A program made the position numbers and the translations under genes. 64,000 nucleotides of DNA, from contig JAMWBK010000008.1 of the NCBI GenBank assembly GCA_029953675.1, positions 2,053,291-2,117,290 on the forward strand, given 5' to 3'. The notes beneath the pieces are model-generated. The model saw nothing but the letters and a program-made list of their open reading frames with translations. It had not been told where the DNA came from and searched no databases. Of this stretch, positions 4,544 to 64,000 are shown one piece after another. The DNA is from Rhodosorus marinus CCMP1338 (Eukaryota > Plantae > Rhodophyta). Position 1 is the stretch's first letter. The number at the start of each line of letters is the position of its first letter.

Positions 4544-4581
4544 TTCATCTTCACGCCTTGCGTAGCGCTTCAGGCTATGCT

Positions 4582-21150: not shown

Positions 21151-21181
21151 CGCTCCAGGCACGGCTGCGAGGTCGCAGCCT

Positions 21182-24253: not shown

Positions 24254-24296
24254 TTCATCTTCACGCCTTGCGTAGCGCTTCAGGCTATGCTAGTAA

Positions 24297-24508
24297 GGTT
24301 GCGGAAATGTTTTGCTGAGCATCCTACTAATATTTGGCGCTCTTGAGGCGTTTAAGTGTCTCCCTTTGGCGATATTCCAGCGACATGCTTTCCGAGGCGC
24401 GCCATCGGCGCCTGGGGTTGCATGCTTCCCTCCCTAGTTATTAGTTCATCTTCACGCCTTGCGTAGCGCTTCAGGCTATGCTAGTAAAGTCCAGTAAAGT
24501 CCAGTAAA
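24297..24508 (+). mobile_element. Tiny 5'-truncated family A copy inserted in the tail of copy 2
   Basis: Repeats the last ~190 bp of copy 2; agtaa is duplicated at the junction. Confidence 0.85.
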
Positions 24509-25529: not shown

Positions 25530-25829
25530 TGTTGAAACGGTCACGCGATGAACGGTGACGATACGCTCTCAGCATCTAGGAGGGTGATTCACACACGGTC
25601 ACACATACGGTAGGACCGATGTGCGAACAGTATACGGTAGACAAACCATGTAGAGGTTCAAACAATTGAAGTAGTTTGAACAGTACAAGGTATCGATCTT
25701 TTGCACAGTATAGTAGGATACTTAAGTGGTAGATATCGAACGCAAGGGTCAGGGAAAACAATAAAGAAACTATCGAAGTTTGGCTGACGGGACTTTGGTC
25801 AAGGTTGGGAATCCTTGAAAATTCCAACA
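25530..25829 (+). repeat. 5' LTR
   Basis: Matches 29764-30063 except for one substitution. Confidence 0.97.
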
Positions 25830-25847
25830 TGGTCTCATCGCTCGGTG
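25830..25847 (+). promoter_or_regulatory. Primer binding site (TGGTCTCATCGCTCGG)
   Basis: Begins TGG immediately after the 5' LTR. Confidence 0.75.
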
Positions 25848-25956
25848 CGATTTAAGACGTTGCTTGGTGCAACTTAAGGATATTGCTTGGTGCGATTCCG
25901 AGAGAGAAGTGTTTATTCTTTAAGGATTGGTTTTTAAAGATCGGGTTTTTCAGAGT

Positions 25957-28900: not shown

Positions 28901-29742
28901 CGCAGGGAGATTACATCCGTAAACTTACCACGACATACGGATTGAAGGGCTGCCGCACCATATCCACGCCATGCACCGTCACACCTTCTACTAAAGAGAC
29001 ATCGATGGAAATGACCACATCACCATTTCAGGAGCTAACTGGATCCCTCCTTTTCCTAAGTACCAGAACGCGACCAGATATAAGTTTTGCAGTTGGCCAG
29101 ATCGCGCGAAAAATGTCAGATTATCGACTTGGAGATTTTGAAAGAGCGCGGCGGATCCTGAGATATTTGGCGGGAACACAAGGCAAAGTCATGAAATTGG
29201 GCGGTGTTTCGAAAGTGGCTCCAGATGGCGAAGAACCGCCGCAGGATGGCGAACAGGGGGGATTCAGATATCAAGTTACCGGATATTCAGACGCGAGCTG
29301 GGCAAGCCACGAAGACAGCAAGAGCACTACAGGGTCACTGATAATGATCAACGGATCGCCGGTGGCGTATAGGTCGTGGAAGCAGAGGGCCGTTGCTCAG
29401 TCGACGGCGGAAGCAGAATACCAGGCGTTAGGGGATATGTTGACGACCCAACGGTGGGTTCAGGAGCTCATCACTGAGACCGGGAGGAATACAAGCATGC
29501 CATTGGTGGCGTACACAGACAATGTGTCGTGTTTGCGATGGGCGACATCTGAAGATAGCAGGATGTCGCGTCACGTATCTGTTAAGCTGCAATACGCCCG
29601 TGAGAGATGCACATCGGAAGAAGTGCAGCTAAGGTATCTGAGCACCGATGAGATGACAGCAGATATGCTAACCAAGGCGCTCACGAAGGAAAGGATGATG
29701 GCCCTTACACCTGGCCTGGGTGTTGTAGATCGACCATCCTAG
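25957..29742 (+). CDS. Copia Gag-Pol polyprotein
   Basis: Domains in Copia order: CYGCKKPGHIRANC knuckle, protease LDSGAT, WHRRLGH, integrase HSDIAGP/DNALEY/NGMAER, RT KARLVARGF/YVDDML, RNase H YSDASWA/ADMLTKAL. First ATG is at 25957; the ORF is open from 25927. Confidence 0.97.
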   Translation: MAARTRGSVAEHDAHLKDFALPSVFTGDQDSFRSFRNWRHQVECYLTVKGLRDVIDNPIDATEAERQYVSAVFSRVLDGPALDTAFASSREAAPEQVWAALRARYEPSSRETADSVWGKVYRREMHTNESPRSLVNWLQTQFAEIREITGVAPTDEEKRRVLRKILEVRGDEYAEFLFYAAKDKTLDWTGFCNDFEELDRLRGSKQFKPKTDYSAQHVTTVQKKKKKKTPRGFLCYGCKKPGHIRANCPEEQDKEENRPEPRRFHAGMTAVRAPARFVLDSGATDHICTSESAFSGPTRMVDSDVTFGDGTTKTLGKMGTVDLKTLKGDMLSLKDTIYLPGGSLNVVSLSRLMENGFSIRSLDGKTLTIEKDGIQVFKATAKSGLLYTDLEMNRDSRPKTAALSFRSNEDTDAMGWHRRLGHPSAGAVRQLEKNGEIRVSDKVPERFECTSCEKAKMTATGGSGPLRKATMHGECIHSDIAGPYPEGRGGLKYIGIFVDEATGMLGAYPLEHRSLIDEAFREHVMIMKTQHGANVKKLKSDNALEYKGMKPLLRDLGIGWDPSAPYTPSGNGMAERMVRTVKERLRAKLFGSGLPENMWPEALPVVVDNINRTPRSFLRGKSPVESVTMKKPAMREIFPFGCEITYKRAGPGKLGNLESRSAKGILMCVRDSHVARIYDPANGGFRESRHWRVFENVFPAKEMSVNGLEREQRNQREVSVNLMRKGDSLYDVPDPESWSEAMNGAYAEDWKRAASEELGSLRANQTWELIPREEVPKSARILGSRLILKVKRNGDGSVQRFKARLVARGFAQRQGIDYEEVFAPTVDFSSVRVLLTIAAVENHEVEQADVKTAYLNASLNEDLYMMQPRGLEEPGRAEHVCRLRRSIYGLKQAGRERHKKLSKDLVAEGFHKLRTESCVYRREKCLIAVYVDDMLIIGSRTEVETAKLMLSNLYDIKHLGEARDFLGVRIERDRRKQEIYLSQGDYIRKLTTTYGLKGCRTISTPCTVTPSTKETSMEMTTSPFQELTGSLLFLSTRTRPDISFAVGQIARKMSDYRLGDFERARRILRYLAGTQGKVMKLGGVSKVAPDGEEPPQDGEQGGFRYQVTGYSDASWASHEDSKSTTGSLIMINGSPVAYRSWKQRAVAQSTAEAEYQALGDMLTTQRWVQELITETGRNTSMPLVAYTDNVSCLRWATSEDSRMSRHVSVKLQYARERCTSEEVQLRYLSTDEMTADMLTKALTKERMMALTPGLGVVDRPS

Positions 29743-29748
29743 TGGCAT

Positions 29749-29763
29749 GAGAGCGAGAGGGAG
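29749..29763 (+). promoter_or_regulatory. Polypurine tract
   Basis: gagagcgagagggag directly before the 3' LTR. Confidence 0.85.
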
Positions 29764-30063
29764 TGTTGAAACGGTCACGCGATGAACGGTGACGATACGC
29801 TCTCAGCATCTAGGAGGGTGATTCACACACGGTCACACATACGGTAGGACCGATGTGCGAACAGTATACGGTAGACAAACCATGTAGAGGTTCAAACAAT
29901 TGAAGTAGTTTGAACAGTACAAGGTATCGATCTTTTGCACAGTATAGTGGGATACTTAAGTGGTAGATATCGAACGCAAGGGTCAGGGAAAACAATAAAG
30001 AAACTATCGAAGTTTGGCTGACGGGACTTTGGTCAAGGTTGGGAATCCTTGAAAATTCCAACA
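29764..30063 (+). repeat. 3' LTR
   Basis: Direct repeat of 25530-25829. Confidence 0.97.
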
Positions 30064-31740: not shown

Positions 31741-33801
31741 ATGATGTGGCGAGGAGCACTTGTGGCAGTATGGATGTTGGGACTCATGGGTATGTGCTCA
31801 GGCATACCTGTCGTGGACCCAACGTTGAAATTTGCTGAGAGACAGACTTGCCCACTACAAGGAATTTTTCCGGCCACCGTAGAGACAACTCTAGGGTGTA
31901 CCACGTTGGATGAGCTTCAGAACAAGCTGGTCGAAACTGTGAACAGGGTCGAATTTAATACCGGGACTCAGGTAGTTGACGATCTGGTGGACGCTGTGAT
32001 GAAGGAAGCTGTTGTCAACTTGATTGATCCGGCGAACACCAGTGCTGGCATATCAGAAGACCTCTTGGGAAGTCCCATGTGCCTCGGAGATTTTGATGGA
32101 ATCGAGATTTCAGATGAGGTGCATCTTGTTGACAGCGGCTGCGACGTGCTCCCACTTGGGGAAGAGGAGAACTGGACGATGATGGCGTTCAACCTACCCG
32201 CGATCTCTTCTATCTGCCCCAATCTACCCAAGACAGAAAGGATGTCGATGTGCTTCGCTTTTAGCTTGGATTGCAACGACTTACCCAGCGTCTCGATTGC
32301 ACTCAACAATAACTTGATTTCGTGTCTTTTGGGGAGCAAAGCTGCTCTAGCAGCCACTGGTGGTGTCAGTGGCGTACTTGCTGTAGGCGCACAGGCCTTT
32401 TTGGATAGCGTGTCGGCGGGAGTCTCATTGAGCAACACCTTTACTGCTGATAGAGAGGTTTACACTGGAAGGAACGGAGTTGAGACGTTGGCCCTCAAGG
32501 GCATATATCACGATCGACTTGAGATGGCGATTTCTCCTGATATCTTCAAACTTCCTGAGATCATCTCAATCGGCGGTCTCCTAGAAAGAGTTGTGTCAGC
32601 AGAGGGCTCCGAACAGTCGTTCACCAACAGAATCGCTGTTTTCCAACCTGGAAATGACGACATTGGACAGGATATCCTCAACAGCGCCAAAGGCCTCAAC
32701 CTCTCGGTTTTCATGCGTGGACAAATCGAGTATGCGATAGAGTTAGAGGAGATCACCAAGAACGTGCTTCCTGACATTCCTACACAAGAACTGAGCGAGT
32801 TCTCGGCGTTTGCGACGAGCTTCGAGCAGACTACTGAGTTGGGGACACGGATGCTACCAGGATTCTATCTGGGTGCAAACGCGAGTAATCCGGCACTCCA
32901 GGTCATCAAAGAACTTGGGCCGGCCATCCTCGACGCTTTAGAGGCCCCGCTGTCCTTCATGAGCATTGTTCCTGGTCTAAACCTTGACAGTGAGGTAACA
33001 GAGCTGCTTGATAATATCGATGAGTTAGACACCGACGCCCTTGAGTTCGGCCTGGCGCTGAGCACTGAGGAGGTGCAGATCATGTTTGCAGCTGCGCTGA
33101 CGTCCGCCGTAAATTTGAAGATTGAGTGTGTCTACGACTATAGCCGGGACAAGTTCAGCTGCAAGGTCCATGCGGGATCTGTCATAACGTTCCTTTCGGC
33201 AGCAGTGGAGATCATTGCAGGGAGAGCAGCTTGGATTATGCGGGAGACGTCCGACTTCTTCGAGTCAGCGGGCGAGGTGGTAGCAGCTTCCGTGGTCGAT
33301 GGCGCGGGGAGTGCCATCGCATTCAGCAACAAGACTGTACAGAGCACTGCTGCATTTTTGGAAACAGTATTTGATGAACTCTCCTCGGAGCTCCAGTCGT
33401 GGGTTACCTCGGGTGTGGTTCTTTGTGGAACAGAGATTGTTGAGGATGCGTTACAGTGCGGATCAGAGATCGTTACTGACGGCCTCGAGTGTGGATTTGA
33501 ATTGGTCACATCTGCTGCTGAATGCGGAACTGAATTTGTGACGAGCGCAGTACAATGTGGTACGGAGGTCGTCACCAGCGGAGCTCAATGTGGTTTTGAC
33601 ACGATTACAAGCGCATCCATATGCGGAGTTGAGACCATTGTCGGCTGCGTCATTAGCCTCTTCAGGGATTGTAAGAAAGCCAAGACCTGCGATGTCCCCA
33701 GAACTTGCAGCGTTCCTAAGTCCTGCAACGTACCCAAGACTTGTAACATCGAAAAAACCTGTGAAATCCCCAATTCTTGTGAGGTTCCCGTTGCTTGCTA
33801 A
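31741..33801 (+). CDS. Secreted protein (~686 aa) with C-terminal 11-aa and 6-aa cysteine repeats
   Basis: Long intact ORF with signal peptide MMWRGALVAVWMLGLMGMCSG; about seven CG[TSF]ExVTxAxx units then about seven [VI]PK[TS]Cx units. Confidence 0.85.
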   Translation: MMWRGALVAVWMLGLMGMCSGIPVVDPTLKFAERQTCPLQGIFPATVETTLGCTTLDELQNKLVETVNRVEFNTGTQVVDDLVDAVMKEAVVNLIDPANTSAGISEDLLGSPMCLGDFDGIEISDEVHLVDSGCDVLPLGEEENWTMMAFNLPAISSICPNLPKTERMSMCFAFSLDCNDLPSVSIALNNNLISCLLGSKAALAATGGVSGVLAVGAQAFLDSVSAGVSLSNTFTADREVYTGRNGVETLALKGIYHDRLEMAISPDIFKLPEIISIGGLLERVVSAEGSEQSFTNRIAVFQPGNDDIGQDILNSAKGLNLSVFMRGQIEYAIELEEITKNVLPDIPTQELSEFSAFATSFEQTTELGTRMLPGFYLGANASNPALQVIKELGPAILDALEAPLSFMSIVPGLNLDSEVTELLDNIDELDTDALEFGLALSTEEVQIMFAAALTSAVNLKIECVYDYSRDKFSCKVHAGSVITFLSAAVEIIAGRAAWIMRETSDFFESAGEVVAASVVDGAGSAIAFSNKTVQSTAAFLETVFDELSSELQSWVTSGVVLCGTEIVEDALQCGSEIVTDGLECGFELVTSAAECGTEFVTSAVQCGTEVVTSGAQCGFDTITSASICGVETIVGCVISLFRDCKKAKTCDVPRTCSVPKSCNVPKTCNIEKTCEIPNSCEVPVAC

Positions 33802-38983: not shown

Positions 38984-40432
38984 ATGTTGGAGAGGTGGAG
39001 AGGCCATCTGTTGAACCGGGAGCGAGGGGTTTGGGTTTGTTCTCTGTTCTTGCTTGGTATCATCAGTGTTGTATCAGTCTGTAGGACGTATTTACATCCC
39101 TGAACCGGTGGAATACCGCAACCGGAGGAATACTGCCAAGGTCGTGGTCAAGAGGGGCGAGCCGGAGGGCACTTAGTCATATGTCAAGACGAGATGGTGG
39201 CGGATGAGATGGGATGTTCCGAAAATTCTTCTCTTTTTTTGGTCGGCCACGCCATTCTCAAGGGAGCACATGGCGAGGAGCTCAGGGCAGAGATCACTCC
39301 AGACGATACATGCGAGCTCAGAGTCACCGATGGACCCGACGTTCCGGTATGTGAGCTTCCGGTTATGTGCGGCTGCGATCCTATCGGATTTTGCTTGCTA
39401 GACACTGCAAGCGAGCCGATTTGCATCTCCAAGGAAGAATACTTGCCATTGGGAAATTGTCTCGGCGATATCGTGGTGAGGACGCTTGCCCACCCCCTAG
39501 CCTTAATTCGGCTACACTACTCCTCGAACCGCGTTCTGAACGCGATTGCTGCCTTAACGATTTTTCCTGACAGATGCCGGACCCAGATACACAATTTTGC
39601 ACCTGTGGTTGCGCGGCTGGCGAGGGAAACTGTCTCCACAACGGGGAATGCATTAAGCCGGACTTTACTGGACTTTACTAGCATAGCCTGAAGCGCTACG
39701 CAAGGCGTGAAGATGAACTAATAACTAGGGAGGGAAGCATACAACCCCAGGCGCCGGACTTTACTAGCATAGCCTGAAGCGCTACGCAAGGCGTGAAGAT
39801 GAACTAATAACTAGGGAGGGAAGCATGCAACCCCAGGCGCCGATGGCGCGCCTCGGAAAGCATGTCTTGCTATGCATTAAGCTTGCAGTGTACGGAAACA
39901 AAAACTGTCTGGCGGTGAGTAGCTACCTGTATTGATTACGGGGACTGGGAGTGGGTAAAATCGTGACTGATCTCTCGTGAACTCTCCCTTACCTCGCTCG
40001 AACTGCGCCAGTACTGCGCAGTGGGTCGTGCACACTGGAGGTCCTGGAGACGACATCATATTTGGTTCGGACGGGCCTGACCTAATCTACGCGTACGAGG
40101 GCAACGACACTATTTATGGTTTGGGTGGAGATGACGAGATATTCGGTGGTGCAGGTGATGACTTAATATTTGGGGGCCAAGGTAACGACTTTATCGAAGG
40201 CGAAGATGGTATTGACTCGATCTACGGCGAAGCTGGTAATGACGAGATTTTTGGCGGCGACAGGGATGACGAAAATTTTGGCGGCGCTGGGGATGACACA
40301 ATTACGGGCGGTAATGGGGTGGACTATATTCTTGGCGGCGAAGGTGATGACATTATTCATTCTAATATGCTATGTGATGACATTTATGCCAATACTCGTG
40401 ATGCCATGCTTAATGGCAGTACTGGGGATTAA
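38984..40432 (+). pseudogene. Spliced gene for a secreted Cys-rich protein with RTX/hemolysin-type Ca-binding repeats, disrupted
   Basis: Hydrophobic N-terminal segment then an in-frame TGA at 39101. Introns at about 39476-39571 and 39916-40021. About ten GGxGxD nonapeptides. Retroelement insertion in exon 2. Confidence 0.65.
39659..39871 (-). mobile_element. Two tandem tiny family A 3' ends
   Basis: Two 3'UTR-plus-tail units flanked by the 11-bp duplication atgcattaagc (39648-39658 and 39872-39882). Confidence 0.9.
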
Positions 40433-44400: not shown

Positions 44401-47400
44401 ACGACGGTAGAGTGGTTAACCACAAGTGCGAGAGGTGGCCTCCCATGTTGGCCCCAGGTGAGGCTATGTTGAATCACATCAGTGCGGGAGCTCCACAATC
44501 GGCTCAAACCCGGGTAGTCTGCAACAGGTGAGCCGGGGCTAGCCCCTCCGTCATCGGCAAGAACTCGGTCGAGGGGACAATCCTCAATCGCTTCAGCTCG
44601 TCCCCATAACAGCTCCCTCCAGGAACGAAAGCGGGACCGATTTGCGTCCGGCACGGCGTTGCACCTCCTGAACGCGTGTTGAAGACCATCATAAATTGTC
44701 AAAAGCGGGGGCGGCAGGGTCACTGGATCCTCGTTGGTCAAAGCTCGAGCCAAGAGGCAGGCACTTCGCATCTGGAAGGTCACCAACGTTCGCAGCGCGG
44801 TAGCCCAGGAGGCAACCGCCGCTGGCGAGCATACCAGCCCACGGTCTGCGACGCCGAATCCCCCTAATCGCAACGGTAGAGCGATCTGTGCACGAATCAA
44901 GTCCCTGTCGGGAGCAGCTTCAAGATCGAGGGCTCATCCAAGAGCGTTCCCCAGTGTTGCAGGGTCATTTCGTCGGCTTTAGCCGCGATCCACGAGCCCC
45001 AAGCTGGAGGCAGGCTGCGCAACCAGTAGTTGAGTCTGGGACCGGCACAAAAGCGGGAAAGCAAGCAGGCCGATTGCAGCATGCTGTCTGGTAGGTGCTC
45101 AATGGCGTCGGTGAGTTGCTTGTGCCGTGCCAAAACTCGCTCGCAGGATGCTTGGACAAAGTTTTCAGTCCCCAATCCGACGCCGTGGTGTTCGAACCCT
45201 TCACGTTCGCTGATTAGTCGCAGAGTGGGTGGCAGAGAGGTCAGCGACACGTCCCTCGGGGGCAGAAAGCGACATTTTTCTGTTTCCACAGTCAAACCGA
45301 CGCGACGTGCAATCGCTTCGATCGCGGTCAGCCCCCTAGCCAGGGTGTCAGGGGGTGCCCAGCAGTGTTACGTCATCGTGGTACGCGCAGATTCGAAGAT
45401 CCGAGACCTCAGTCGAAAGACGTAAAAGTACGAGCTGTAGGGCACAGGCATGAAGAAGAGGTCCGCAAGGGTCGCCTTGTTGGACGCCAGTATGTGCTTG
45501 AAAAACAGTGCCCTCCGTTGTCAAGTAGGGGAGGCTCTCCCCTCCGTAAATACCCGATAGAAACGGCCACGCCTTGGGAAACACCCGTCGGAGCACCTCT
45601 AGCGCATGCGTCCGCGACACGCTGTTGAATGCGTTCCGGAAATCAACCACCAAGACTCCCCACTCCGGCCTACTGGCGCGTTCTAGCTCGATCCCATGGG
45701 TGATCAGTTCGCAACCCCCAGAAAATCCCACCCCTACTTGCAAGGGCGCCATAAAAGCTGTGACGCGCTGGCGAAGGCGCTGGCATAGCCACCTCCCGGA
45801 TAACTTCCGTAGGCTCTCCACCATCCCGATCGGCCGGAGACGCGGGTGGGCCGGCTGGTGGTCAGGTTCCGTGAGCAAGCAAAGCTGTGCCTGCCGGAGA
45901 TGTTCCCATGGCGCAGACGCACCCAATACGCCCTGGAACAACTTGTTGAGGATCCTCAGAAGCGCGCTCTGGCCAGGCTGGCTCAGGGCCTGCAATAGCT
46001 CTGTTCTTAGTCCGGAGGGTCCGGGACCGCGTCCCCGACGCGAGGTACGAAGCAAATCCTCCAGGTCAGACTCACTGAGCGTCAGATCGATGCGAAACCT
46101 GGCCAACTCCGGACGGTCCAAGAATACCTCGAATTCAGGGGACAAGTCCACGTCGGACTCAGGGAACAAAGACGACACCGTCTGGGCGAGACTATCATCG
46201 TAGGGGAGGACAGGCGCCTGGCCCTCCAAAACCCGCGCCGCTCGACTTAAATCGCCCACTGCTATCAATTTCTGTACTCGAGCCGGCACGGGCGACACTT
46301 TGCCATGCCGAGTCCGACGGGCGGATGGTGCTGACGACGCCAAATAGCTGCGCTGTAGTACTTCGAAGTCTTCCTTCAAGAACCGGGCCAGTCGGTCTCG
46401 TACTCGCCATCTGCGCTCCGATGTGTGAATGGGGGCCAGAATCAGGCGCGGCATGACCCCCAGAAAAACCCAAATGACTGTGTCCCGAATGTTGCGAGCC
46501 AGGCTCGTGAAGATGAAATCGAGAATGATTCCAGCTACTAGAAGGTCTCCACGAGGGAGGACGACTGGGGGAATGCCCCCACGGAGGGGAAGCGAGCCTC
46601 CTTCCAAAGAAATCCACCGCCGGAGCCAACTCCGAAAACGCGTACGCCAAATGCCCCAGTCTCCGCCCTCCTTCAGGACATAAGACTGTAGATCCATAGG
46701 CTGCGACCTCGCAGCCGTGCCTGGAGCGCTAATCGTGCTTCTTCCCCTTAGACCCGGGGGAGTCGGTCCTCGCTCTCTTACCTCCTATCCGCACCAAAGT
46801 CGTGAGCCGCCCACTCCGCGAGGCTCGCGGAACGGAAACCGCGGGCTTCAGCAAAGTAACCTGGGCGTCCCCCACCGCCATGCCCTCAGTCTGCTCCCCT
46901 GCCTCACCGCTCTCGCTGGAAGTAGTGCTGGAAGCAGAGCCCTCCAAAATCCCCACCCGCTGCAGCTCTGTCTTGTAGCGCGAAGTCAGCACAAGTCGCC
47001 TCTCCAGATCGAAGAAACTGGACACCGCCATGCGCAGGTGACAAGGGCCCGACCGGAAGCGCTCCAACAAGATCCTCTCAAGGCGCTGAATCCGTAGCCA
47101 ATGGATCGCTGCCGCCTTCACGCTGCTCTCACGCTCAGAGAGCCCTGCCGTTTCTCCCGGAGACAGGAAATTGCCCGAGAAACGGTCAAAATCGAAGTGC
47201 AAAACCACCTGCGGGTTGCAGCGCAGCCACCGGGCGCTCTCAGGCCACTGCTCGGTAGGCTTCGCCAGCAAGGCCTCCAGGTACTTGGCGGCGGTTTCGG
47301 AGACCAAAAACAGCACATCGCGGCCCTCATAGTTTGCGAAGAAGAAATCACCCCTGCTGCACCCTAACGATTCCGCAAAAGTGTCCCGGAAATCTCGCAT

Positions 47401-50105
47401 AGACGGAACCTGTCCTCGTGTAGTCTGGGGCCGGACATTTCGCACCCACAGAAATTGGAGAGTGGTCTCCACAGGTCCATCCTGAGGCTCGCGAGATGGT
47501 AGGAAACGGAGCATAGCCGCCGTACGTGTGGCAGTGGTGCCCTTCCGCAAGACTGATGCGTACGAAGCGCCCCCCTTGCGCCGCAGTAGCGGGGAGCTGG
47601 TGACCACCTGAGGGCTGGCCCAAGAGAGGGAAGTCCACAGCTGCAGTCTCCTCCACACCGGTTGCCGCACAGTCACCACCACCATTGCCTCGAGTCCCCG
47701 AGCGCTGAAGCGCGTTTTGGCCCGGCCTGCCGCTCCCCAACGTCGTACTGTCCCGCGCAGAAGCAACAGCCCTCGCCTGTCCCGGGACAGGTTCATGTTG
47801 ATTGACCTGATGTTGACTGCCTTCAGCCAACGCTGCCACTCTGGGGCAATTCAAATTCTCGTCCGAATTTGAATTTGACCTGGCCAGCAATCCCGATTCC
47901 AGCCCACCTAGCTTCTGGGTGAGCTGAGGGAGCACTCCACGATCACTCGCAGCCGTGATCAGGCTGGTGACAGCGGAGATAAGTGCACGCGCCTGGGTGC
48001 CAGAAGCGCCTTCCAAGTCAACCTCGGAAGAAAACGTGCCGCAGCTGAGGCGAACACGGAGTCCCCCACCTGGCAGTGCCTCCTTGGGAGGAGGCTCCGT
48101 CGAGCGCGGAGATATCCCTACCATCCTGAGGGAATGCGCAAAGGAAACGTTGCACCACCAATATGAAACCGCACCGAGAGAATAATCGACCAAACTCAAC
48201 CCAAATAGGAAAGGCCCCGCAACACACCCACCCGGACGACAGAAGTAGTTGCAAATGCAACGACGCCCCGCGGAAAATCGAGGGGAAGGCGTACCAGAGG
48301 AAGCGCTTCCCGTAAACGAACACGCTCGCGACCGAAAAAGAAACAAAACCCCAATCCTCGACAACTACCAAAACGCCCAATACTTGTCAGCTCGCAACCC
48401 CCGGAAAATCCCACCCCGACCTGCAAGGGTGCCATAAAGGCGGTGACCCGCTGGCGAAGGCGCTGGCATAGCCACCTCCCAGCTAACTTCCGTAGACTCT
48501 CGACCGTACCGATCGGCCGGAGACGCGGGTGTGCCGGCTCGTGGTCGGGTTTCGTGAGCAAGCAAAGTTATGCCCGTCGCAGATGGTCCCAAGCGGTAGG
48601 CGCACCCCCTGCACCCTGGAATAGCATATTCAGGAGCTTCACCAGTGCGCTCTGGCCAGGCTTGCTCAAGGCCTGCAGTAGTTCCATTCGGAGCCCGGAG
48701 GGTCCAGGGCAGCGTCCACGCCGGGAGGTCCGGAGCAAATCCTCCAGATCAGAATCACGGAGCGTCAGGTCGATGCGAAACCTGGCCAACTCTGGACGAT
48801 CTAAAAAGGCGTCGAAGTCGGGTAGCATGTCCACGTCGGACGAAGGGAACACGCTGACACAGTCTGGTCGAGACTCTCGTCGTAGGGGAGGACAGGCGCC
48901 TGGCCCTCCAGGACCCGTGCCGCTCGGCTGAGGTCGCCCACTGCTTTCTGTACTCGAGCCGTGACGGGCGAGACTGGTCCAGGCCGAGCCCGACGGACAG
49001 AGGGTTCCGATGACGCCAAGTAGCTTTGCTGCAACACCTCAAATTCCCCCTTCAGGAACATGGCCAGTCGTTCCCGGACGCGCCATCTGCGCGCCGATGT
49101 GTGAGTGGGGGTCAGAATCAGGCGCGGCATGACTCCCAGAAATTGCCACGTGACGGTATCGCGAAAGTTACGTGCCAGACTCGTGAAAATGAAGTCCAGG
49201 ATGGTCCCAGCCACTAAGAGCTCTCCTCGAGGTAGGACGACAGGCGGAATCCTGCCACGGAGGGGTAGGAAACCTCCTTCCATATCAATCCACCGCCGGA
49301 GTCAACTCCGAAAATGCGTCCTCCAGATGCCCCAGTCTCCGCCCTCCTTCAAGACATAAGACTGCAGGTCCATGGGCTGCGATCGCGCAGCCAAACCTGG
49401 GGAACTAATCGTGCTTCTCCCCCTTAGACCCGGGGGAGTCGGTCCTAATCCGTTTGGTGCTTTGCCCTCCTAAGGTTGTCAGACGGCCGCTCCTCGATGC
49501 TCGCAGTATATTGCCTGCTGGGTTAGACGAATCGTTCGGGAGTCTCTCAACCGACATGCCCTCCGGCGCTCCCACTTCGCCACTATCACTGGAACTGGTA
49601 CTAGAGGCAGATCCATCTAACATCCCTAGCCGCTGAAGCGCTGACTTGTAGCCCGAGTTCAGCACGAGGCGCCGCTCCCGATCGAAAATGGTGGAGACGG
49701 CCGCGCGCATGTGGCGTGGACCCGTCCGAAAGCGCTCCAACAAGATCCTCTCGATGCGATGAATGCGCAACCAATGAATAGCTGCCGCCTTCACGCGGCT
49801 GTCCTGCTCCGAAAGCCCTTCAGTCTGCCCTGGGGACAAGAACTGACCGGAGAACCGGTCGAACGCAAAGTGCATGGTGACCTTTGGGTGGCCACTAACC
49901 ATCGTGCACTTTCGGGCCACTGCTCGGTGGGTTTCCCGAGCAACGCTTGAAGGTAAGTGGTGGCGTTCGCTGTGACGAGGAAGTGAACGTCGCGACCCTC
50001 CGTGTTGGCAAAAATAAAATCTTCACGACGACAGCCCAAGGATTCCGCAAAAACGTTCCGAAAATCGCGCAGACTCAGTACTTGGCCCCGGGTTGTCAAC
50101 CCGTC
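41455..50105 (-). mobile_element. Family A' long copy (41455-43627 and 48387-50105), split by family A copy 3
   Basis: The two parts rejoin in frame at GGCEL|ITH. ORF1 C-terminal part is at 49405-50105. Confidence 0.87.
43628..48386 (-). mobile_element. Family A copy 3, full length, with frameshifts and deletions in both ORFs
   Basis: ORF2 pieces at 45348-46697, 44897-45295 and 43697-44446. Flanked by a 6-bp TSD (tcagct at 43622-43627 and 48387-48392). Confidence 0.92.
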
Positions 50106-54291: not shown

Positions 54292-54446
54292 AATCAACGG
54301 AGTACTTTGGGCCGGGAACGTAGAGCTTGCGCGGTCTGCGTGTAGGTCAGTCGGATGAGCCACTGATTTCTTATTTTTTTTTTATCGTAGCTGAAGACCC
54401 TGGGGTGGAGGGTCAATCCCAATCATTTTGCCTTGCTAGTGATAGA

Positions 54447-55816
54447 CGCTCTTGGATGAGCCCCTCGATCTTGAAGCTGCTCCCGACAGGGACTTTATTC
54501 GTGCACAGATCGCTCTACCGTTGCGATTAGGGGGATTCGGCGTCGCAGACCGTGGGCTGGTATGCTCGCCAGCGGCGGTTGCCTCCTGGGCTACCGCGCT
54601 GCGAACGTTGGTGACCTTCCGGATGCGAAGTGCCTGCCTCTTGGCTCGAGCTTTGACCAACGAGGATCCAGTGACCCTGCCGCCCCCGCTTTTGACAATT
54701 TATGATGGTCTTCAACACGCGTTCAGGAGGTGCAACGCCGTGCCGGACGCAAATCGGTCCCGCTTTCGTTCCTGGAGGGAGCTGTTATGGGGACGAGCTG
54801 AAGCGATTGAGGATTGTCCCCTCGACCGAGTTCTTGCCGATGACGGAGAGGCTAGCCCCGGGTCCCCTGTTGCAGACTACCCGGGTTTGAGCCGATTGTG
54901 GAGCTCCCGCACTGATGTGATTCAACATAGCCTCACCTGGGGCCAACACAGTGCCGCTCACACAGTCATGCTCAATTCTCCTCTCACGCCGCCTACCACT
55001 GCCGCTCGTCTCCGCGGCATGGGAGGCAACCTCTCGCACTTGTGGTTAACCACTCTACCGTCGTCATTGAGTCATCGTCTCGATGCTTTCCAGTTCCGTT
55101 CTGCCGCACGGATCTATCTCGGTTTGCCACAGGCTCCGTGGCACTCTAATCGGCCGTCTTTCTGTCAGGGATGTGAGAGCCGGATTGACGCTTGTGGCTA
55201 CCACTTCCTGGGTTCCTGCGGACTGTTGCGAGGTCTCCGTACGAGGCGTCACACTCGCCTCAAGTACATCCTCAGCGAATCTTTGACTCGGATAGGGCAT
55301 ACGGTTGAGGTTGAGTCGGAACTGCCCAGATCCATCTCGGACTCTGCACCGCCCCGTTGTATAGCCGATCTCCTCGTCTCTGACGCTGCTGCCAGACGCT
55401 CAACATATGTGGACCTTGCGATTACCTGCCCCGTGGCCAGCGCCCACCTCACCGCAGCCGCCCGCCGCCGGGGGGCCGCGGCTTCAGCCCTTCGAAGAGT
55501 TAAGGAACGACGGTATGCTGAGAGCATGGCCAGTCTGCCTTGCGCTGAGGGTCGCTCTCACCGGTTCCAGCCATTCATTGTGGAAAGCTTTGGTCACGTG
55601 GATAAGTCGGGTTTAGAGTGGTTGCGGAAATGTTTTGCTGAGCATCCTACTGAATATTTGGCGCTCTTGAGGCGTTTAAGTGTCTCCCTTTGGCGATATT
55701 CCAGCGACATGCTTTCCGAGGCGCGCCATCGGCGCCTGGGGTTGCATGCTTCCCTCCCTAGTTATTAGTTCATCTTCACGCCTTGCGTAGCGCTTCAGGC
55801 TATGCTAGTAAAGTCC
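54447..55816 (+). mobile_element. Family A copy 4, 5'-truncated (ORF 54452-55768)
   Basis: Near-identical to the ORF2 C-terminal part; agtgataga is duplicated on both sides. Confidence 0.92.
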
Positions 55817-55827
55817 AGTGATAGAGA

Positions 55828-56681
55828 CAGTCATGCTCAATTCTCCTCTCACGCCGCCTACCACTGCCGCTCGTCTCCGCGGCATGGGAGGCCACCTCTC
55901 GCACTTGTGGTTAACCACTCTACCGTCGTCATTGAGTCATCGTCTCGATGCTTTCCAGTTCCGTTCTGCCGCACGGATCTATCTCGGTTTGCCACAGGCT
56001 CCGTGGCACTCTAATCGGCCGTCTTTCTGTCAGGGATGTGAGAGCCGGATTGACGCTTGTGGCTACCACTTCCTGGGTTCCTGCGGACTGTTGCGAGGTC
56101 TCCGTACGAGGCGTCACACTCGCCTCAAGTACATCCTCAGCGAATCTTTGACTCGGATAGGGCATACGGTTGAGGTTGAGTCGGAACTGCCCAGATCCAT
56201 CTCGGACTCTGCACCGCCCCGTTGTATAGCCGATCTCCTCGTCTCTGACGCTGCTGCCAGACGCTCAACATATGTGGACCTTGCGATTACCTGCCCCGTG
56301 GCCAGCGCCCACCTCACCGCAGCCGCCCGCCGCCGGGGGGCCGCGGCTTCAGCCCTTCGAAGAGTTAAGGAACGACGGTATGCTGAGAGCATGGCCAGTC
56401 TGCCTTGCGCTGAGGGTCGCTCTCACAGGTTCCAGCCATTCATTGTGGAAAGCTTTGGTCACGTGGATAAGTCGGGTTTAGAGTGGTTGCGGAAATGTTT
56501 TGCTGAGCATCCTACTGAATATTTGGCGCTCTTGAGGCGTTTAAGTGTCTCCCTTTGGCGATATTCCAGCGACATGCTTTCCGAGGCGCGCCATCGGCGC
56601 CTGGGGTTGCATACTTCCCCCCCTAGTTATTAATTCATCTTCACGCCTTGCGTAGCGCTTCAGGCTATGCTAGTAAAGTCC
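55828..56681 (+). mobile_element. Family A copy 5, 5'-truncated, head-to-tail with copy 4
   Basis: Flanked by agtgatagaga (55817-55827 and 56682-56692). Confidence 0.92.
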
Positions 56682-57569
56682 AGTGATAGAGATAATCTGG
56701 GGTTACGTAACCCCAGATACAAATAGACAGCTGCCAAGCAAAGTACAGTTATATATTCTTCTCATGCACAAGCACGATCCTTGTATTGAAAGTCTTGTTT
56801 TCCATCGCAGGAAATCTTACTGGGTGAGCAAAGCTGAGGAGCTCCTCGGTGACGACGATAATGGTGATGGGGACGGGCACGTAGGTCTGCAGTACCATCA
56901 CTACGAAATCGACCCAACTTATCAGGACGGTATCCCCATGAAGGTGAGTTTCACAGCAGAATTCCTGCATACTAATTCGCAACCGCAAATCATCTTGACG
57001 TATGTGTGTGTAGTTTATACGCATTGACGAAAATCTTCACGATTTGCAAGTACGTATGATACATGACCTTAGACTCCAAACAAATAATTACAACGAGATG
57101 GATAAGTATAATGAATGTACGCAATACGCTTATTGAGTGTATATATACAGAATCAACGAGTAATCGCAGTCCTTACACCCTTCGTTCCTCCGCCGCATGG
57201 AAGGAATTCGCAACGGTCCTCGCAGGCATCGATCAGGTCGTAGAATTCGTGATCAGAGTCCGGATCCTATTTCCTCCTCGGAATGCTCGTGAAGTCGCGA
57301 AGTGCGTTTCCTCTCGAGGATTGAGGTGGGTCTTCCCCTTGACTTCACGGGGCTCAGTCGTGTCCATGTCCAGTATCGTTTCCAGCGCGTTTTTGACGCG
57401 CCCGTGTTCGTGGATCTACCCTCCATAACGGAGGTGGTGTCCAGTATCCCTACAAAGCTCTCGCAGAGGTGCTTCCGGACTTCCGGCACTATGTATCAAC
57501 TACTTAAGCGCTGCGCTATCTGGAGACCTCTGGCCGTTGGAATGTAGGTTCCTCAACACCTGAGCTCCT

Positions 57570-59202: not shown

Positions 59203-60297
59203 ATGGAGAAAACAATACTGTTTGGATGCGTTTTGATGGTGGCACTGCACGTGAGCGTCGCTGTGAATCCGAATGTGGTGGCCATCACTGGAAAGCGTCA
59301 GGACGTAATCCAGCTCAATGATGCGGAGACGTTGGAGACGGTCCAGGTTATTGAAGACAAGAGTGGAAATAAGCTATTTCAGCTCATTTCGCTGGGGAGA
59401 AATATCTACGTGACGACTGTGAATAACGACGAAGAGTTACATGCCGAGCTTCGGATGTATGAAATTCAGTCTAGAACGAACAAGCTTGAGTTTGTGCAAT
59501 CGAAATCGTACGGAATTCAGTGCATCCAGCCGATCGCATTGACAGCAAGCTACGATTACAGCGACCAGACGGTGCTGGCTATGACGTGCCTGGAGACAGA
59601 CACGGTCATGGTGGTGAATCCTGCGACGCTGAAACTGATCAAGGTAATTCCGAAACCCGTTATCAAGGACATCCTCATCAAGGATATCGCGGAGTCTGCG
59701 ATGACCGCCAGGTACCTCTACGTCGCCTACGTCATCGGCCCGCAGTTTGATGACGACTTCAGCCAGGGGTTGCTGGTACAGTACAGCCGGAACACGTGGG
59801 AGGTCGTCAACTTCTCCATAGTTCGTGGACAATACTTTCACCTCCTGATAGCCGGAAGCAGTGATCTCTTCCTGACGGCGACAGGCAACGGTGAATCCTA
59901 CCTCCTCCAGTTGAACCCAAACACCCTAGAGGAAGTTAATCGGAAAACCCCCAAGGGCTTCGATTTTCTCCGGATGACGATGACTCCTGACCAGAGGAGT
60001 TTCTACATGTACATCCACGGCTCAGCGAAGAAAGCGGGAAGAATGCGTAGCTTCGACCAGACCATTTACCCGGCCAATAAGTTCTGCAGCGATGTCCGAA
60101 TCGAGATGTCCCCAGGCACCCAACCCATCGTCATCAACGGCTACCTGTTTATCAGGTCCAACAAGTCGATGACAAGGTTCACCCTCAAGAGTGAATCCGG
60201 ATGTCCCCGTCAGAAGTCTCAGGCCGCGTATACCCTAGACTCAGTCCAAGATTCTGGCGTCGCCATGGCCTGCCTGAACTGCCTCTCGATCTCTTAG
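59203..60297 (+). CDS. Secreted protein (364 aa), probable beta-propeller; last host gene before the telomere
   Basis: Signal peptide MEKTILFGCVLMVALHVSVA; beta-rich units of about 40 aa (VMVVNPATLKLIKVIP, LYVAY). The fold is inferred. Confidence 0.75.
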   Translation: MEKTILFGCVLMVALHVSVAVNPNVVAITGKRQDVIQLNDAETLETVQVIEDKSGNKLFQLISLGRNIYVTTVNNDEELHAELRMYEIQSRTNKLEFVQSKSYGIQCIQPIALTASYDYSDQTVLAMTCLETDTVMVVNPATLKLIKVIPKPVIKDILIKDIAESAMTARYLYVAYVIGPQFDDDFSQGLLVQYSRNTWEVVNFSIVRGQYFHLLIAGSSDLFLTATGNGESYLLQLNPNTLEEVNRKTPKGFDFLRMTMTPDQRSFYMYIHGSAKKAGRMRSFDQTIYPANKFCSDVRIEMSPGTQPIVINGYLFIRSNKSMTRFTLKSESGCPRQKSQAAYTLDSVQDSGVAMACLNCLSIS

Positions 60298-60584
60298 GGC
60301 AGAATTGAACCCGCGAGGCGGAAACTGCTCAACGGAAAGCTCCACAGCGCAGCAGAACTTTCAGCTAAGAACGGAGCTATCTGTGGTTGCTGTTCTGGGG
60401 AGCCAGGTTGTTGTTTCTTTTGAGAGTGGCGTAAATTTTCGGTGAAGAGCTGTTTGCTTCTCTCTCTCTCTCTCTCTGTATCTGTCTCCAACTCCTGACC
60501 GTCTGTCGCTTCGCTCTTATGTTGAGATGTGATTTAGTAAAAAAATACTTTGAAATCGATCACCTGAATCGAACGCCGGCTTTA

Positions 60585-60604
60585 GGGGTTACGTTAGTCT
60601 GGGG
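60585..60604 (+). repeat. Interstitial telomeric repeat (1.25 units)
   Basis: ggggttacgttagtctgggg, an exact match to the terminal array. Confidence 0.9.
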
Positions 60605-61754
60605 ACCCTGAAGCATGGCAGGCAAAACTCCACACGTTCCTGGACACCGCAACAGACTCCGGACGCCACTGGTGGATGGTCACCAACAGCCCAGTACGCA
60701 CCTGAGAGCATGTCCCTAATGCGCAAGTCAAGCATTGGAACCTACTACTCCAGCGTGCTCTGGGGTGAAAGATGCCCTACTGTGGAGTCAAAATGTCCTC
60801 CCTACCATTGGGGCGGAACTACAGCCTCAAAAGTACACCCTATTCGGCTACCACATAGCATCCCCTCGACTGGTTACCAGATACATGCCGGACCTCAATG
60901 TTTCTCGCGAAGGAGTAACCATACACTCCATTCCCATTGGGACGAGAAAATATGTGGAAGAAGCTTTGAGAACACTACAAAACAAGCATGAAACACTGGG
61001 CAAAGAGATAGCCCATCTGCCTCCTGAAGAGCTCAACACACAACTGGCGCTGTTCCGATACTGCTCGGAAACGAGACTTGACTACACCCTAAGGACAGTG
61101 GCTTACCACTACGGCAGAAGTTTAGCACGAGAAGCGGACTACAACACACGACTACAGTTGGAAAGGCTACTAGGCAGTCTACAAACAGCCCAACGGACGA
61201 CCCTGACGGAACGCACCCGGCTTGGAAGCAGGTAGCACTCCCCTGCCGATGGGGGGGACTGGGATTCTGCACTAGAAGGCGCATCCAACCTATTTCTTTC
61301 TACACAGGTTGGATGCAAACCTTTGCAGCTAACAAGGGCTATTGGCCCCACCTACAAAAATTGTTAGAACGCACCCAGGAAGCTACACCACAGCTGCTCA
61401 ACCCCCCGAGGACACTACACCGCTCTACTGACGACCTCCCCTCCCAAATCCTAGTGGCAACTACAGCCATTAGGGGGAGACTGAGACCGGAAACCAGCCC
61501 CCGAATAAGGCAGCTCCTCAACCCCACGTACCTGACTGCTGCCCCTGCAGCAAATTCCCCCCCTGACCAGTCTGCGGTGAAGCAAGGTTCCTTACAACAG
61601 ACCCTCTCAAGAGAGGCACACCTTACTGCTTTCACCCGACTGGTCACGGATCCCTTACTCGACCCGGAACATCGTGCCCGAATCCGTTCCGCTGCAGGAG
61701 CAGGTTCAGGCGTCTGGCTAAGAGATTTGCCACAATTCGGACCCCGAAAATTGA
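60605..61754 (+). mobile_element. Family D ORF2 fragment with an internal deletion of the RT core and frameshifts
   Basis: DPEAWQAKLHTFLDTATDSGRHW (ORF2 N-terminus) is joined to VKDALLWSQ...LALFRYCSETRL...GGLGF; no RLE remains. Confidence 0.75.
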
Positions 61755-61794
61755 GTTAGTCTGGGGTGACGTTAGTCTGGGGTTTCTGGGGTTA
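61755..61794 (+). repeat. Interstitial telomeric repeats (about two units plus a partial variant)
   Basis: gttagtctggggtgacgttagtctggggtttctggggtta. Confidence 0.9.
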
Positions 61795-61846
61795 TTGGAT
61801 AAGGTTCGAAATTAAGTTTGTAGGTTTGGTTCGCCTGGGGTAAAAT

Positions 61847-63430
61847 ATGCCAAACACTGGCACTTCCCCTTCGTTTGGGGAGGGGAATTCGAAGAATACC
61901 GGTGCAATGAGCGGAATGCTGCCTGCCTCTCCAATTGCTGAACGAGAGGACGGGCATGGGTCACATGATGGACTACAAGCGACTACTTTACGCCCAGAAG
62001 AACCGTGCCAGGAGGGGAGTCGGACAGAGCCTTCTACGTCATCCTCTCCCGCTAACACGTTCCTCCACCAACTTCGAAGCTACGATCAGTGCTATCACGC
62101 CCTCGGAATTGGGGAGCAGGACATCGCGAACTTCTACAAAGCAGTCTTCAATCTCTACTCGCGAATTAACAGTACCACAGAGATACATAATGTCACCAGC
62201 CGCCTCACGGAACTTGCACAGAAGCCCCACATGTGGCAAGCTTCTGCACAGACTTCGAATCCCTCGGGAGCTTCGGCGCATCACCGGCCGACGGCGGTGG
62301 TCAATCAACTTGCGGCCGGAACGGGCTTCAATCAAGTTCCGGTCGGGACAGGTGTCCCTGCGGGTGTCCGGTTTGAGACGGCTTTCCCGGCCCTTGGGAA
62401 TGACACCCCCAGACCCACCTACGCGGCGGTTTCGGCGGTAGAAGTACCAGAGAACGGTGTAGAGACACCCATCCGCACCATGCGAAGGCCTGGGCCGCAG
62501 ACGCAACATGCCGCCCTGAAGCAGTTACACGCCACAGTGGGAGGGGCCAGCTGGGGCCCTGAGACCACGCCAGTGCTTGTTACCCTCCGAAATATCCGTC
62601 CCCCACGACAGGATGAGGTGGCTGCTTCTGACTTCACTACGGTCCTCTGCCGGGCGTTGGGCATTCCCGGCTCGTATGTGGCGCATTTGGACTTTATCTC
62701 TTCACACGTGAGCCTCGTGTGCCACCCTGATGCAATTCCTCTTCTCCAAAGCGCAATCAGCCGGGGTGTGTTCCGGACTGGGATTTTCGGATCCTTTACC
62801 ATGCGACACCCCGATCGACAGGTGAGCCTGTACACCGGGCACGGTTTAGAGGCGGATAACCTGCTGGGGTTCAACGAGCGGCAACGACTCGCCGGCGGAG
62901 ATGTCAGGGCTCAAACGCAGAGACGAGCGATCGAGCAGATCATACGCATCCGCGCGCGGCTGAGCCGTCGACATCTCTCGTTTACAACTCTCGCCCGAGT
63001 GCACGAGATGCTGGACCAACGGCTTGAAAAGTTACAAGCCCTTCAACAGCAACCTGCGGTATCCAGGGAGAGCGCGGAACCCCTAACGACTGCAGCCGCA
63101 CCAAACGCAGCCGCTGAAGCCTCGTCGTCTCCGGACGATGCACAGGCAGCCTGTGGGACTGTTGCCACTCAGGGTGACTCCGGTGGAACATCCCAAGTAC
63201 CGCAGGATGTGGAAGAAGAGGACAATCCCCATGCGGAACTCTCGTGCAACTTGCCGGAACCTCCTCAACTTAAGCGCTCGCGCCGGTCTGCCAACGGATC
63301 TAGCACGGATGCAGAAATGACACCAGCTCCCCTCGACCCCACACCGAGCGAGAATGGACTACAACCTGAAACTGCAGCCAATACAAACCCGTCGGTTCAG
63401 CAGGAAGCGCAGGACAACGAGCAATCATAA
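61847..63430 (+). CDS. Family D ORF1 (527 aa)
   Basis: Shares motifs with family A ORF1: TYAAV vs SYASV, LRNIRP...DF...LG vs VRNVRP...DF...LG, RAIEQIIRI vs AAIHWLRI. Confidence 0.75.
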   Translation: MPNTGTSPSFGEGNSKNTGAMSGMLPASPIAEREDGHGSHDGLQATTLRPEEPCQEGSRTEPSTSSSPANTFLHQLRSYDQCYHALGIGEQDIANFYKAVFNLYSRINSTTEIHNVTSRLTELAQKPHMWQASAQTSNPSGASAHHRPTAVVNQLAAGTGFNQVPVGTGVPAGVRFETAFPALGNDTPRPTYAAVSAVEVPENGVETPIRTMRRPGPQTQHAALKQLHATVGGASWGPETTPVLVTLRNIRPPRQDEVAASDFTTVLCRALGIPGSYVAHLDFISSHVSLVCHPDAIPLLQSAISRGVFRTGIFGSFTMRHPDRQVSLYTGHGLEADNLLGFNERQRLAGGDVRAQTQRRAIEQIIRIRARLSRRHLSFTTLARVHEMLDQRLEKLQALQQQPAVSRESAEPLTTAAAPNAAAEASSSPDDAQAACGTVATQGDSGGTSQVPQDVEEEDNPHAELSCNLPEPPQLKRSRRSANGSSTDAEMTPAPLDPTPSENGLQPETAANTNPSVQQEAQDNEQS

Positions 63431-63556
63431 TGCCGTCCAGACGCAGGGGACGTAAACGCCCACGAGAAGAGCCTCTGTTCTTCTCTGACCGGGAGGCCTG
63501 GATTTGCCGCTGGAACGCTTTCGTAGCTGAGATCACGGAGGAGGGGAGGCATTGGA
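63430..63556 (+). pseudogene. Family D ORF2 N-terminal stub
   Basis: The ATG overlaps the ORF1 stop (TAATG). MPSRRRGRKRPREEPLFFSDREAWICRWNAFVAEITEEGRHW then runs into the telomere. Confidence 0.7.
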
Positions 63557-64000
63557 GTTACGTTAGTCTGGGGTTACGTTAGTCTGGGGTTACGTTAGTC
63601 TGGGGTTACGTTAGTCTGGGGTTACGTTAGTCTGGGGTTACGTTAGTCTGGGGTTACGTTAGTCTGGGGTTACGCTAGTCTGGGGTTACGTTAGTCTGGG
63701 GTTACGTTAGTCTGGGGTTACGTTAGTCTGGGGTTACGTTAGTCTGGGGTTACGTTAGTCTGGGGTTACGTTAGTCTGGGGTTACGTTAGTCTGGGGTTA
63801 CGTTAGTCTGGGGTTACGTTAGTCTGGGGTTACGTTAGTCTGGGGTTACGTTAGTCTGGGGTTACGTTAGTCTGGGGTTACGTTAGTCTGGGGTTACGTT
63901 AGTCTGGGGTTACGTTAGTCTGGGGTTACGTTAGTCTGGGGTTACGTTAGTCTGGGGTTACGTTAGTCTGGGGTTACGTTAGTCTGGGGTTACGTTAGTC
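63557..64000 (+). repeat. Terminal telomeric array, 16-bp unit GGGGTTACGTTAGTCT, about 27.7 copies
   Basis: Perfect tandem array running to the window end, G-rich strand pointing outward, one variant unit at 63675. Confidence 0.88.

Follow-up and report, generated by a model that had tools for sequence, protein, structure and literature searches.

A 16-bp repeat at two chromosome ends of the red alga Rhodosorus marinus: a probable telomere with a long unit and a retroelement directed at it

The nuclear chromosomes of Rhodosorus marinus (Stylonematophyceae) very probably end in a native telomeric repeat of 16 bp, which would be made by telomerase and which is also the target of a retroelement of the R2/CRE type; this view is built on the arrangement of repeats and elements in the assembled DNA. 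The repeat fills the last 444 bp of the window (the whole stretch of 64,000 bp that was analysed), where a sequence-only reading had taken it for a telomere with an unusually long unit. That interpretation is upheld by the position of the repeat at the ends of two contigs, by its equal polarity at both, by internal copies that are short relics, and by two junctions at which it appears to have healed a break. At the sequence level, the array passes all tests for a telomerase-type repeat that were applied, and departs from such repeats in the length and composition of its unit. The further suggestion of a new telomere type stands in part: a unit of 16 bp with two cytosines, in a motif that was not found in papers, speaks for it, while in other respects the end is of the telomerase type.

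Location, host and assembly

The window covers positions 2,053,291-2,117,290 of contig JAMWBK010000008.1 (2.12 Mb), the final 64 kb, and ends where the contig ends. For the ORF of 364 aa at 59203-60297 there is a record of identical sequence on the same contig, where 3,703 bp separate the end of the gene from the end of the contig. The distance from 60297 to 64000 in the window is the same, which places the array at the physical end of the contig. The host had been suspected to be an alga, and it is one: the ORF at 31741-33801 (685-686 aa) is 96% identical to the R. marinus protein NDN08_004867, and the 364-aa gene is matched exactly on the R. marinus GenBank assembly. The 685-aa ORF has no exact product on record. 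No tRNAs were detected in the window by a tRNA scan, and no Rfam families at gathering thresholds.

The paper describing the assembly (GCA_029953675.1; Lee et al. 2023) reports telomeres on 12 contigs, six of them telomere-to-telomere, which amounts to at least 18 telomeric contig ends, and its main text and supplementary files nowhere state the telomere motif. The authors of the assembly evidently recognised these arrays as telomeres, and recognition as a telomere is therefore not new. What appears to be undescribed so far is the 16-mer motif itself, its properties, and the architecture of elements and telomere at the chromosome ends.

The repeat array at two contig ends

The terminal array, (GTTACGTTAGTCTGGG)n, occupies 63557-64000 on the + strand and consists of 27.75 units of GGGGTTACGTTAGTCT, the last of them incomplete at the window edge. 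TRF, run on the window, reports 63553-64000 with a period of 16, 28.0 copies, 99% matches, 0 indels and a score of 882; the three bases at 63554-63556 (GGA) belong to the flanking retroelement, and the array proper starts at 63557. The sole variant unit, GGGGTTACGCTAGTCT at 63666-63681, differs by one T>C change. Both TRF and unit-by-unit cutting agree with the initial description of a homogeneous array with one variant from 63557, and the sub-motifs that had been picked out (GGGGTTA, GTTAG and a palindromic ACGT) are all present in the unit. With up to two mismatches allowed, the head-to-tail 16-mer has 29 matches in the window, compared to 0.05 expected from 100 shuffles. The composition of the unit is G6 T6 A2 C2, and the + strand is the G/T-rich strand, running 5' to 3' towards the window end. 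Telomeric units typically have 5-8 bp and the form TxAyGz, a pattern that is usual and not strictly defining; the present unit, with 16 bp and two C, does not follow it. Strand folding of four G-strand and four C-strand units gave no significant Watson-Crick structure (z -1.4 and -1.0, respectively, for Watson-Crick pairing only), and a metagenome scan for two exact 16-mer units returned 0 loci. Array lengths and terminal position are here given as they stand in the long-read assembly.

The 364-aa gene is a member of a small family, and its paralogue P0043 is the last gene on contig 4 (JAMWBK010000004.1; 3,191,941 bp, 3.19 Mb). The paralogues P0039, P0040, P0042, P0038 and P0041 are internal, and P0043 alone led to another contig end. 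The locus at the right end of contig 4 is referred to as L007, with coordinates that are locus-internal. It closes with an array of 271 bp (19449-19719), 17 units of the 16-mer in the same orientation as in the window, which runs to the contig end; the subterminal DNA differs from that of the window. The proximal part of this array (L007 19455-19484) has one short variant unit of 12 bp (GGGGTTACGTCT, without TAGT), and in both the contig-4 and the window array the variant units are inner and not at the tip.

The 16-mer is thus present at two of two contig ends reached (contigs 8 and 4). Both are right ends and show GGGG on the + strand; at left ends the C-strand form, (AGACTAACGTAACCCC)n, is expected. 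Examination of contig ends, so far as it went, therefore gave the same repeat with the same polarity at a second contig end. At the level of the assembly, a head-to-tail array stands at the physical chromosome end of two contigs, the G-rich strand faces outward at both right ends, and one repeat is common to different chromosomes. Over the 212 kb surveyed on six contigs, tracts longer than 60 bp are limited to the two terminal arrays (271 and 444 bp), internal tracts being 12-56 bp long, so that long arrays are confined to the termini within this sample. The internal satellite that had been considered as the contrary outcome was not encountered: the array lies at the contig end and internal copies are short relics only.

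A retroelement inserted in the repeat

A previously unannotated 4.85-kb non-LTR retroelement with two ORFs, designated T, is associated with the repeat at both ends. Its full-length copy lies at L007 14349-19200 (4,852 bp) and encodes an ORF1 of 527 aa and an ORF2 with a reverse-transcriptase domain (Pfam RVT_1). In this copy, a frameshift near L007 16850-16913 splits ORF2. The REL nuclease consensus of CRE, SLACS, MoTeR and FoTeR is CCHC...RHD...E...R/KPD...D/E (PMC12857005), and the C-terminus of T ORF2, read in translation, is C-x2-C...C-x9-RHD-x20-E-x10-RPD-x14-D. The protein aligns to the R2 protein PDB 9nl2_A across the nuclease (E 1e-5 overall). Within the N-terminal 310 aa of T ORF2, no APE-type nuclease was found (no Exo_endo_phos match at E<0.1 in Pfam). 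The ORF1 of T has no similarity to the ORF1 of the main retroelement family of the window, and neither carries a Pfam domain.

Three copies of T are present in L007, the full-length element, a 710-bp 3' piece and a 196-bp 3' piece, each with a different 5' truncation point. They share one 3' junction, ...CCCAATAAAGCTCAC followed by GGTTACGTTAGTCT (register CTCAC/GGTTACG), and all three are preceded by a repeat tract ending ...TCTGGGGTTA(C), i.e. GGGGTTA(C), with GGTTAC duplicated at both sides. The 3' end of T, ...AATAAAGCTCAC, is joined directly to the target, without poly(A). The ORFs read towards the terminus and the 3' end of the element is distal. By its reverse transcriptase, C-terminal nuclease motif and single target position, T belongs to the REL-endonuclease class (R2/CRE/NeSL; MoTeR/FoTeR), and these motifs and junctions mark it as an R2/CRE-like element that inserts site-specifically, at a single position of the 16-mer.

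Telomere-repeat-specific non-LTR elements are represented by SART1 and TRAS1 of Bombyx mori, which have an APE-type N-terminal endonuclease and a poly(A) end. Like T, they occupy a fixed position in the telomeric unit and exist alongside telomerase-type repeats, and the orientation of SART1 is that of T, the sense strand being continuous with the G-strand. T lacks the APE domain and the poly(A) of TRAS/SART elements (R1 clade) and has an R2-like C-terminal nuclease instead, and so falls outside that group. MoTeR (Magnaporthe oryzae) and FoTeR (Fusarium oxysporum) are closer in design: like T, they combine a reverse transcriptase with a C-terminal restriction-enzyme-like endonuclease, insert into telomere tracts, and occur mostly as truncated copies with short telomere tracts between them (PMC12857005). 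In these fungal elements the 5' end points towards the terminus (PMC12857005), whereas in T it is the 3' end. T also differs in its two ORFs, in its target (the 16-mer as opposed to TTAGGG) and in its red-algal host. It is an algal addition to the few known telomere-repeat-specific retrotransposons.

Repeat addition at broken ends

The window copy of T (61795-63556, + strand) is truncated at its 3' end. It comprises positions 1-1762 of 4852, is 99.6% identical to L007 14349-16110, and holds the 5' UTR, the 527-aa ORF1 (61847-63430) and, from 63430 on, ~43 codons at the start of ORF2. The copy is cut at ...GGCATTGGA and capped by the terminal array. At this first junction, the window is identical to intact T through ...GGAGGAGGGGAGGCATTGGA and then continues as GTTACGTTAGTCTGGGG... 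to the contig end; past the same point, intact T in L007 reads CGCGCATCA... and extends for a further 3.1 kb. The second junction (L007 13445/6) concerns a related non-LTR element, X. Its L007 copy matches the window copy through ...GCATGTCCCTA and is followed by GTCTGGGGTTACGTTAGTCTGGGG, while window X goes on as ATGCGCAAG.... The repeat starts in a different register at each of the two junctions (GTTACG at the first, GTCTGG at the second), and the overlap between element and repeat is 0-2 nt.

Non-LTR elements lose their 5' end, not their 3' end, on insertion. The window copy of T keeps its 5' end, is without the 3' two-thirds and is capped by repeat, and is therefore best read as a terminal break that was healed de novo on a G-rich primer. 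At two junctions, then, the repeat seems to have been added de novo to non-telomeric ends, the element copies compared being 96-99% identical. Varying registers together with an overlap of 0-2 nt are the behaviour of telomerase at arbitrary ends. De novo addition of telomeres at broken ends is described in ciliates, yeast, Plasmodium and human terminal deletions, and there likewise the repeat is joined directly at a G-rich site with minimal complementarity (compare ...GGAGGAGGGGAGGCATTGGA/GTTACG...). In R. marinus the healing is read from paralogous copies of elements and was not seen as an event.

A rival idea is that the 16-mer is the 3' tail of T, and that ends are extended by retrotransposition rather than by telomerase, as in Drosophila. 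Short tandem repeats are common at the 3' end of non-LTR elements, and one, (AGTAAAGYCC)n, forms the 3' tail of the main retroelement family of the window. The 16-mer directly follows the 3' end of T in every case (L007 14277, 19201 and 19449), and the terminal kilobases are made up of elements and repeat tracts only. Such an origin is nevertheless very unlikely: the window array follows a T that is cut at 1762 of 4852, within the first ORF2 codons and not at the T 3' end, and the other tract follows an X that is cut mid-sequence. Tracts also adjoin unique host DNA without any upstream element (window 60585, L007 11486), and are found upstream of 5'-truncated elements of other families (5383 of L002, a locus on contig 12). 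T is flanked by repeat on both sides, with GGTTAC duplicated, as would be seen for insertion into an existing array. Its 3' end faces the terminus, whereas elements that lengthen chromosomes by priming on the chromosomal 3' end lie the other way round, and neither terminus has the HeT-A/TART arrangement of Drosophila (5' end distal, no short-repeat cap), both being pure 16-mer arrays with the T 3' end distal. A fixed register of insertion, as against variable registers of healing, means that the array is a pre-existing target and a cap that can be added, and not an element tail.

A terminal satellite kept by recombination, in an ALT-like manner and without telomerase, is given just as little credence. 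Exchange between subtelomeres is clear, given that the T copy and the degenerate tract upstream of it are 99.3-99.6% identical between contigs 8 and 4. Against this, the element sequence that adjoins the repeat at the healed junctions is not homologous to it, the overlap is 0-2 nt and the registers vary, which fits templated addition better than homology-driven copying; the assembled arrays, at 271 and 444 bp, are also short, and they are nearly perfectly homogeneous. Least credible of all is the view that the contigs broke at an internal satellite or at an artefact of assembly or adapters: tandem repeats do break assemblies and the window alone is silent on DNA past base 64000, but the window end is a contig end, two ends have equal polarity, long reads would easily span arrays of a few hundred bp if these were internal, relics on contigs 2, 4, 8 and 12 indicate that the motif is biological, no internal array exceeds 56 bp in 212 kb, and the assembly authors scored telomeres on 12 contigs.

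Synthesis by telomerase, the preferred explanation, would require that the template in the telomerase RNA spans at least 17-20 nt, enough for one C-strand unit (AGACUAACGUAACCCC) and a few nucleotides used in realignment. Faithful copying of 16 nt in every round would yield a homogeneous array; this homogeneity points to a sharply bounded template, such as yeasts with long units have. At broken or eroded ends, healing would start from G-rich 3' ends that serve as primers with a complementarity of 0-2 nt. GGGTTA is the usual contact of Myb-type telomere-binding proteins, and the GGGTTA core of the unit could be a docking site for double-strand telomere-binding proteins of this type. R2/CRE-like retroelements that carry a restriction-like endonuclease in turn insert specifically into the arrays, and insertion, terminal loss and healing, repeated in cycles, would produce the stack of element pieces and short tracts that lies distal to the last host gene.

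A broader proposal has several parts: that the R. marinus telomerase, with a template of this length, makes a homogeneous, C-containing unit of 16 nt which is among the longest telomerase-type units known outside budding yeasts and is not described in print; that long complex units may be general in non-cyanidiophyte unicellular red algae; and that the ends hold a previously undescribed R2/CRE-like lineage specialised on the 16-mer. Taken as a whole, it is a proposal towards which we incline only slightly. A long-template telomerase, if true, offers a handle for finding the first rhodophyte telomerase RNA.

Comparison with known telomeres

Telomeric motifs of red algae include AATGGGGGG in Cyanidioschyzon merolae, TTTATT(T)AGGG in Galdieria, TTAGGG-like reads in Porphyra and TTTTTAGGGG in Bostrychia (PMC3622300, PMC7046594, bioRxiv 10.1101/2025.02.11.637652), and cyanidiophycean telomeres have been termed 'highly diverse'. 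Rhodosorus is like the other red algae in having a terminal tandem array with the G-rich strand outward, and a lengthened unit that departs from TTAGGG/TTTAGGG. The units of C. merolae, Galdieria and Bostrychia have 9-11 bp and contain T, A and G only, whereas that of Rhodosorus has 16 bp, two cytosines and an ACGT palindrome, and it is not derivable from the other red-algal units by simple expansion of T or G runs. In a 2013 survey, neither TRAP nor hybridisation was informative in three rhodophyte classes, whose telomeres were described as 'recalcitrant to standard analysis'. A 16-mer unrelated to the probes would explain these failures, if relatives share such units. No red-algal telomerase RNA is confirmed, an attempt in Galdieria in 2021 having failed (PMC8287931). 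A search of the literature with rotation-proof 8-mers and 10-mers, on both strands, returned primers and the GGTTAC repeats of S. pombe only; the tables of TeloBase lie outside this search and may hold an earlier entry. Within the literature searched, then, the motif is not one that had already been catalogued, no paper with the 16-mer having been found outside the TeloBase tables.

Among budding yeasts, the unit is 16 bp in Candida glabrata, 25 bp in Kluyveromyces lactis and 23 bp in Candida albicans, and GGGTTAGTCA in Yarrowia lipolytica. These yeasts likewise have a long, complex and homogeneous unit with bases other than G and T, implying a long template with precise boundaries, and TTAGTCTGGGG in the Rhodosorus unit resembles TTAGTCAGGG of Yarrowia, a likeness that may serve as a lead. 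As budding yeasts are fungi and Rhodosorus is an archaeplastid alga, the long unit would have arisen independently. The remark in the sequence-only reading that long units are best known from budding yeasts was a fair one, the general point being made in PMC3082875.

Red-algal telomeres are a recognised gap, and a defined 16-nt unit is now at hand in a species with a chromosome-level assembly. The unit allows TRF, Bal31, FISH and telomerase assays to be run with the right probe and primers, namely (GGGGTTACGTTAGTCT)3 and a primer ending ...GTCTGGGG. It opens the way to a template-based search for the telomerase RNA, and makes it possible to test whether this RNA is of the Pol III type as in plants and ciliates. 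Also testable are the evolution of a long template independently of the yeasts, and the nature of the proteins that read a unit with a GGGTTA core.

Structure of the contig-8 end and internal tracts

The last annotated host gene of the contig-8 end is the 364-aa gene at 59203-60297 (+ strand), which is secreted-looking and has no Pfam domain. A 20-bp exact telomere tract, GGGGTTACGTTAGTCTGGGG (60585-60604, + strand), lies 288 bp downstream of it and adjoins unique DNA. The paralogous last genes of contigs 8 and 4 and their downstream flanks are homologous up to such short tracts (window 60585-60604, L007 11486-11503), and distal to these both ends consist of element pieces and telomere tracts only. 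The tract at 60585-60604 is probably an ancestral chromosome end. It is followed in the window by a fragment of X (60605-61754, + strand), an internal piece of ORF2 that is truncated at both the 5' and the 3' end and has a telomere tract on each side; by blastp this fragment matches main-family ORF2 residues ~500-817, and its DNA matches L007 13333-13447 at 96.5%. Then come a degenerate telomere tract of ~2.5 units, GTTAGTCTGGGGTGACGTTAGTCTGGGGTTTCTGGGGTTA (61755-61794, + strand), between the truncated element and the T 5' end, the copy of T cut at 1762, and the terminal array. All tracts of the window end have the G-strand on the + strand. In the simplest history, the chromosome once ended just past the 364-aa gene, and elements then repeatedly entered the telomere, which lost its terminus and was healed again.

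Short relics of the 16-mer occur on contigs 2, 4, 8 and 12, in unique as well as repeated DNA. Of those in the window, the tracts at 60585-60604 and 61755-61794 and a palindrome built from the motif are absent from the sequence-only reading. A perfect 22-bp palindrome, TCTGGGGTTACGTAACCCCAGA, is found at 56696-56717, and consists of 13 nt of the G-strand and their complement, overlapping at ACGT; in 64 kb, chance alone would not be expected to produce a 13-mer of the unit. The palindrome, which directly follows the (AGTAAAGTCC) tail on a retroelement copy, could be the relic of a fold-back or a sister-chromatid fusion at a very short telomere. At 19445-19486 (+ strand), a telomere-like unit is split by a run of A20 (GTAACGTTAGT-A20-GTCTGGGGTT) and followed by TTTAGGG, directly 5' of a full-length retroelement of the main family.

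Near the middle of contig 2, the locus L005 (JAMWBK010000002.1, 1,698,366-1,719,457 of 3,480,314) has seven C-strand tracts of 12-56 bp that flank a paralogue of the 364-aa gene, six upstream and one downstream, plus one G-strand tract downstream and a T-like piece. Several of the tracts are exactly one unit (GGTTACGTTAGTCTGG) between element ends. The locus may represent a former chromosome end that became internal, the site of an old fusion, or a cluster of elements that target telomeres.

A candidate for the telomerase RNA, AACGTAACCCCAGACTAACG (minus strand, L002 5383-5402), the one C-strand 20-mer observed, has the look of a 16+4 template but was rejected as a telomere relic: it sits between inverted copies of retroelements, with a 5'-truncated RT ORF directly downstream of it, and its Rfam matches are noise. 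An origin of the 5' telomere tracts by template switching onto telomerase RNA was likewise discarded, since the tracts are G-strand in the sense of the element, the opposite of what copying of a C-rich template gives.

Other elements and genes of the window

Copies of non-LTR retroelements, arranged as a mosaic, make up most of the window together with one intact Ty1/copia element. The main non-LTR family is represented at 1-4600, 19499-24500, 44446-48365 (minus strand) and 54446-56692, and by older fragments, the copies being 97-99% identical. It has an ORF1 of 469 aa and an ORF2 of 1018 aa (RT, CCHC/RRH nuclease-like C-terminus), and its tandem 3' tails number from 2 to ~30 units of AGTAAAGYCC. 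The retroelement ORFs of the window are unannotated in the GenBank assembly. The non-LTR reverse transcriptase has distant relatives only (best 32% identity), the nearest named ones coming from the red alga Pyropia. The Ty1/copia element (25530-30063) has 300-bp LTRs that are 99.7% identical and an uninterrupted gag-pol ORF of 1271 aa (zinc knuckle, integrase, RVT_2), and was probably inserted recently.

The ORF at 39971-40429 contains RTX-like GGxGxD calcium-binding repeats (GNDTIYGLGGDDEIFGG), and its paralogue on contig 12 (L002 17966-19330) is annotated with Pfam HemolysinCabind, which is unusual in a eukaryotic alga. The gene order 685-aa, HemolysinCabind, 364-aa (window 31741-60297) is repeated on JAMWBK010000012.1 from ~196 kb to ~76 kb (L002, L004). 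The repeated order runs towards the left end of that contig, with 92-96% protein identity and over ~120 kb of gene-poor DNA, and this shared gene order suggests a subtelomeric segmental duplication.
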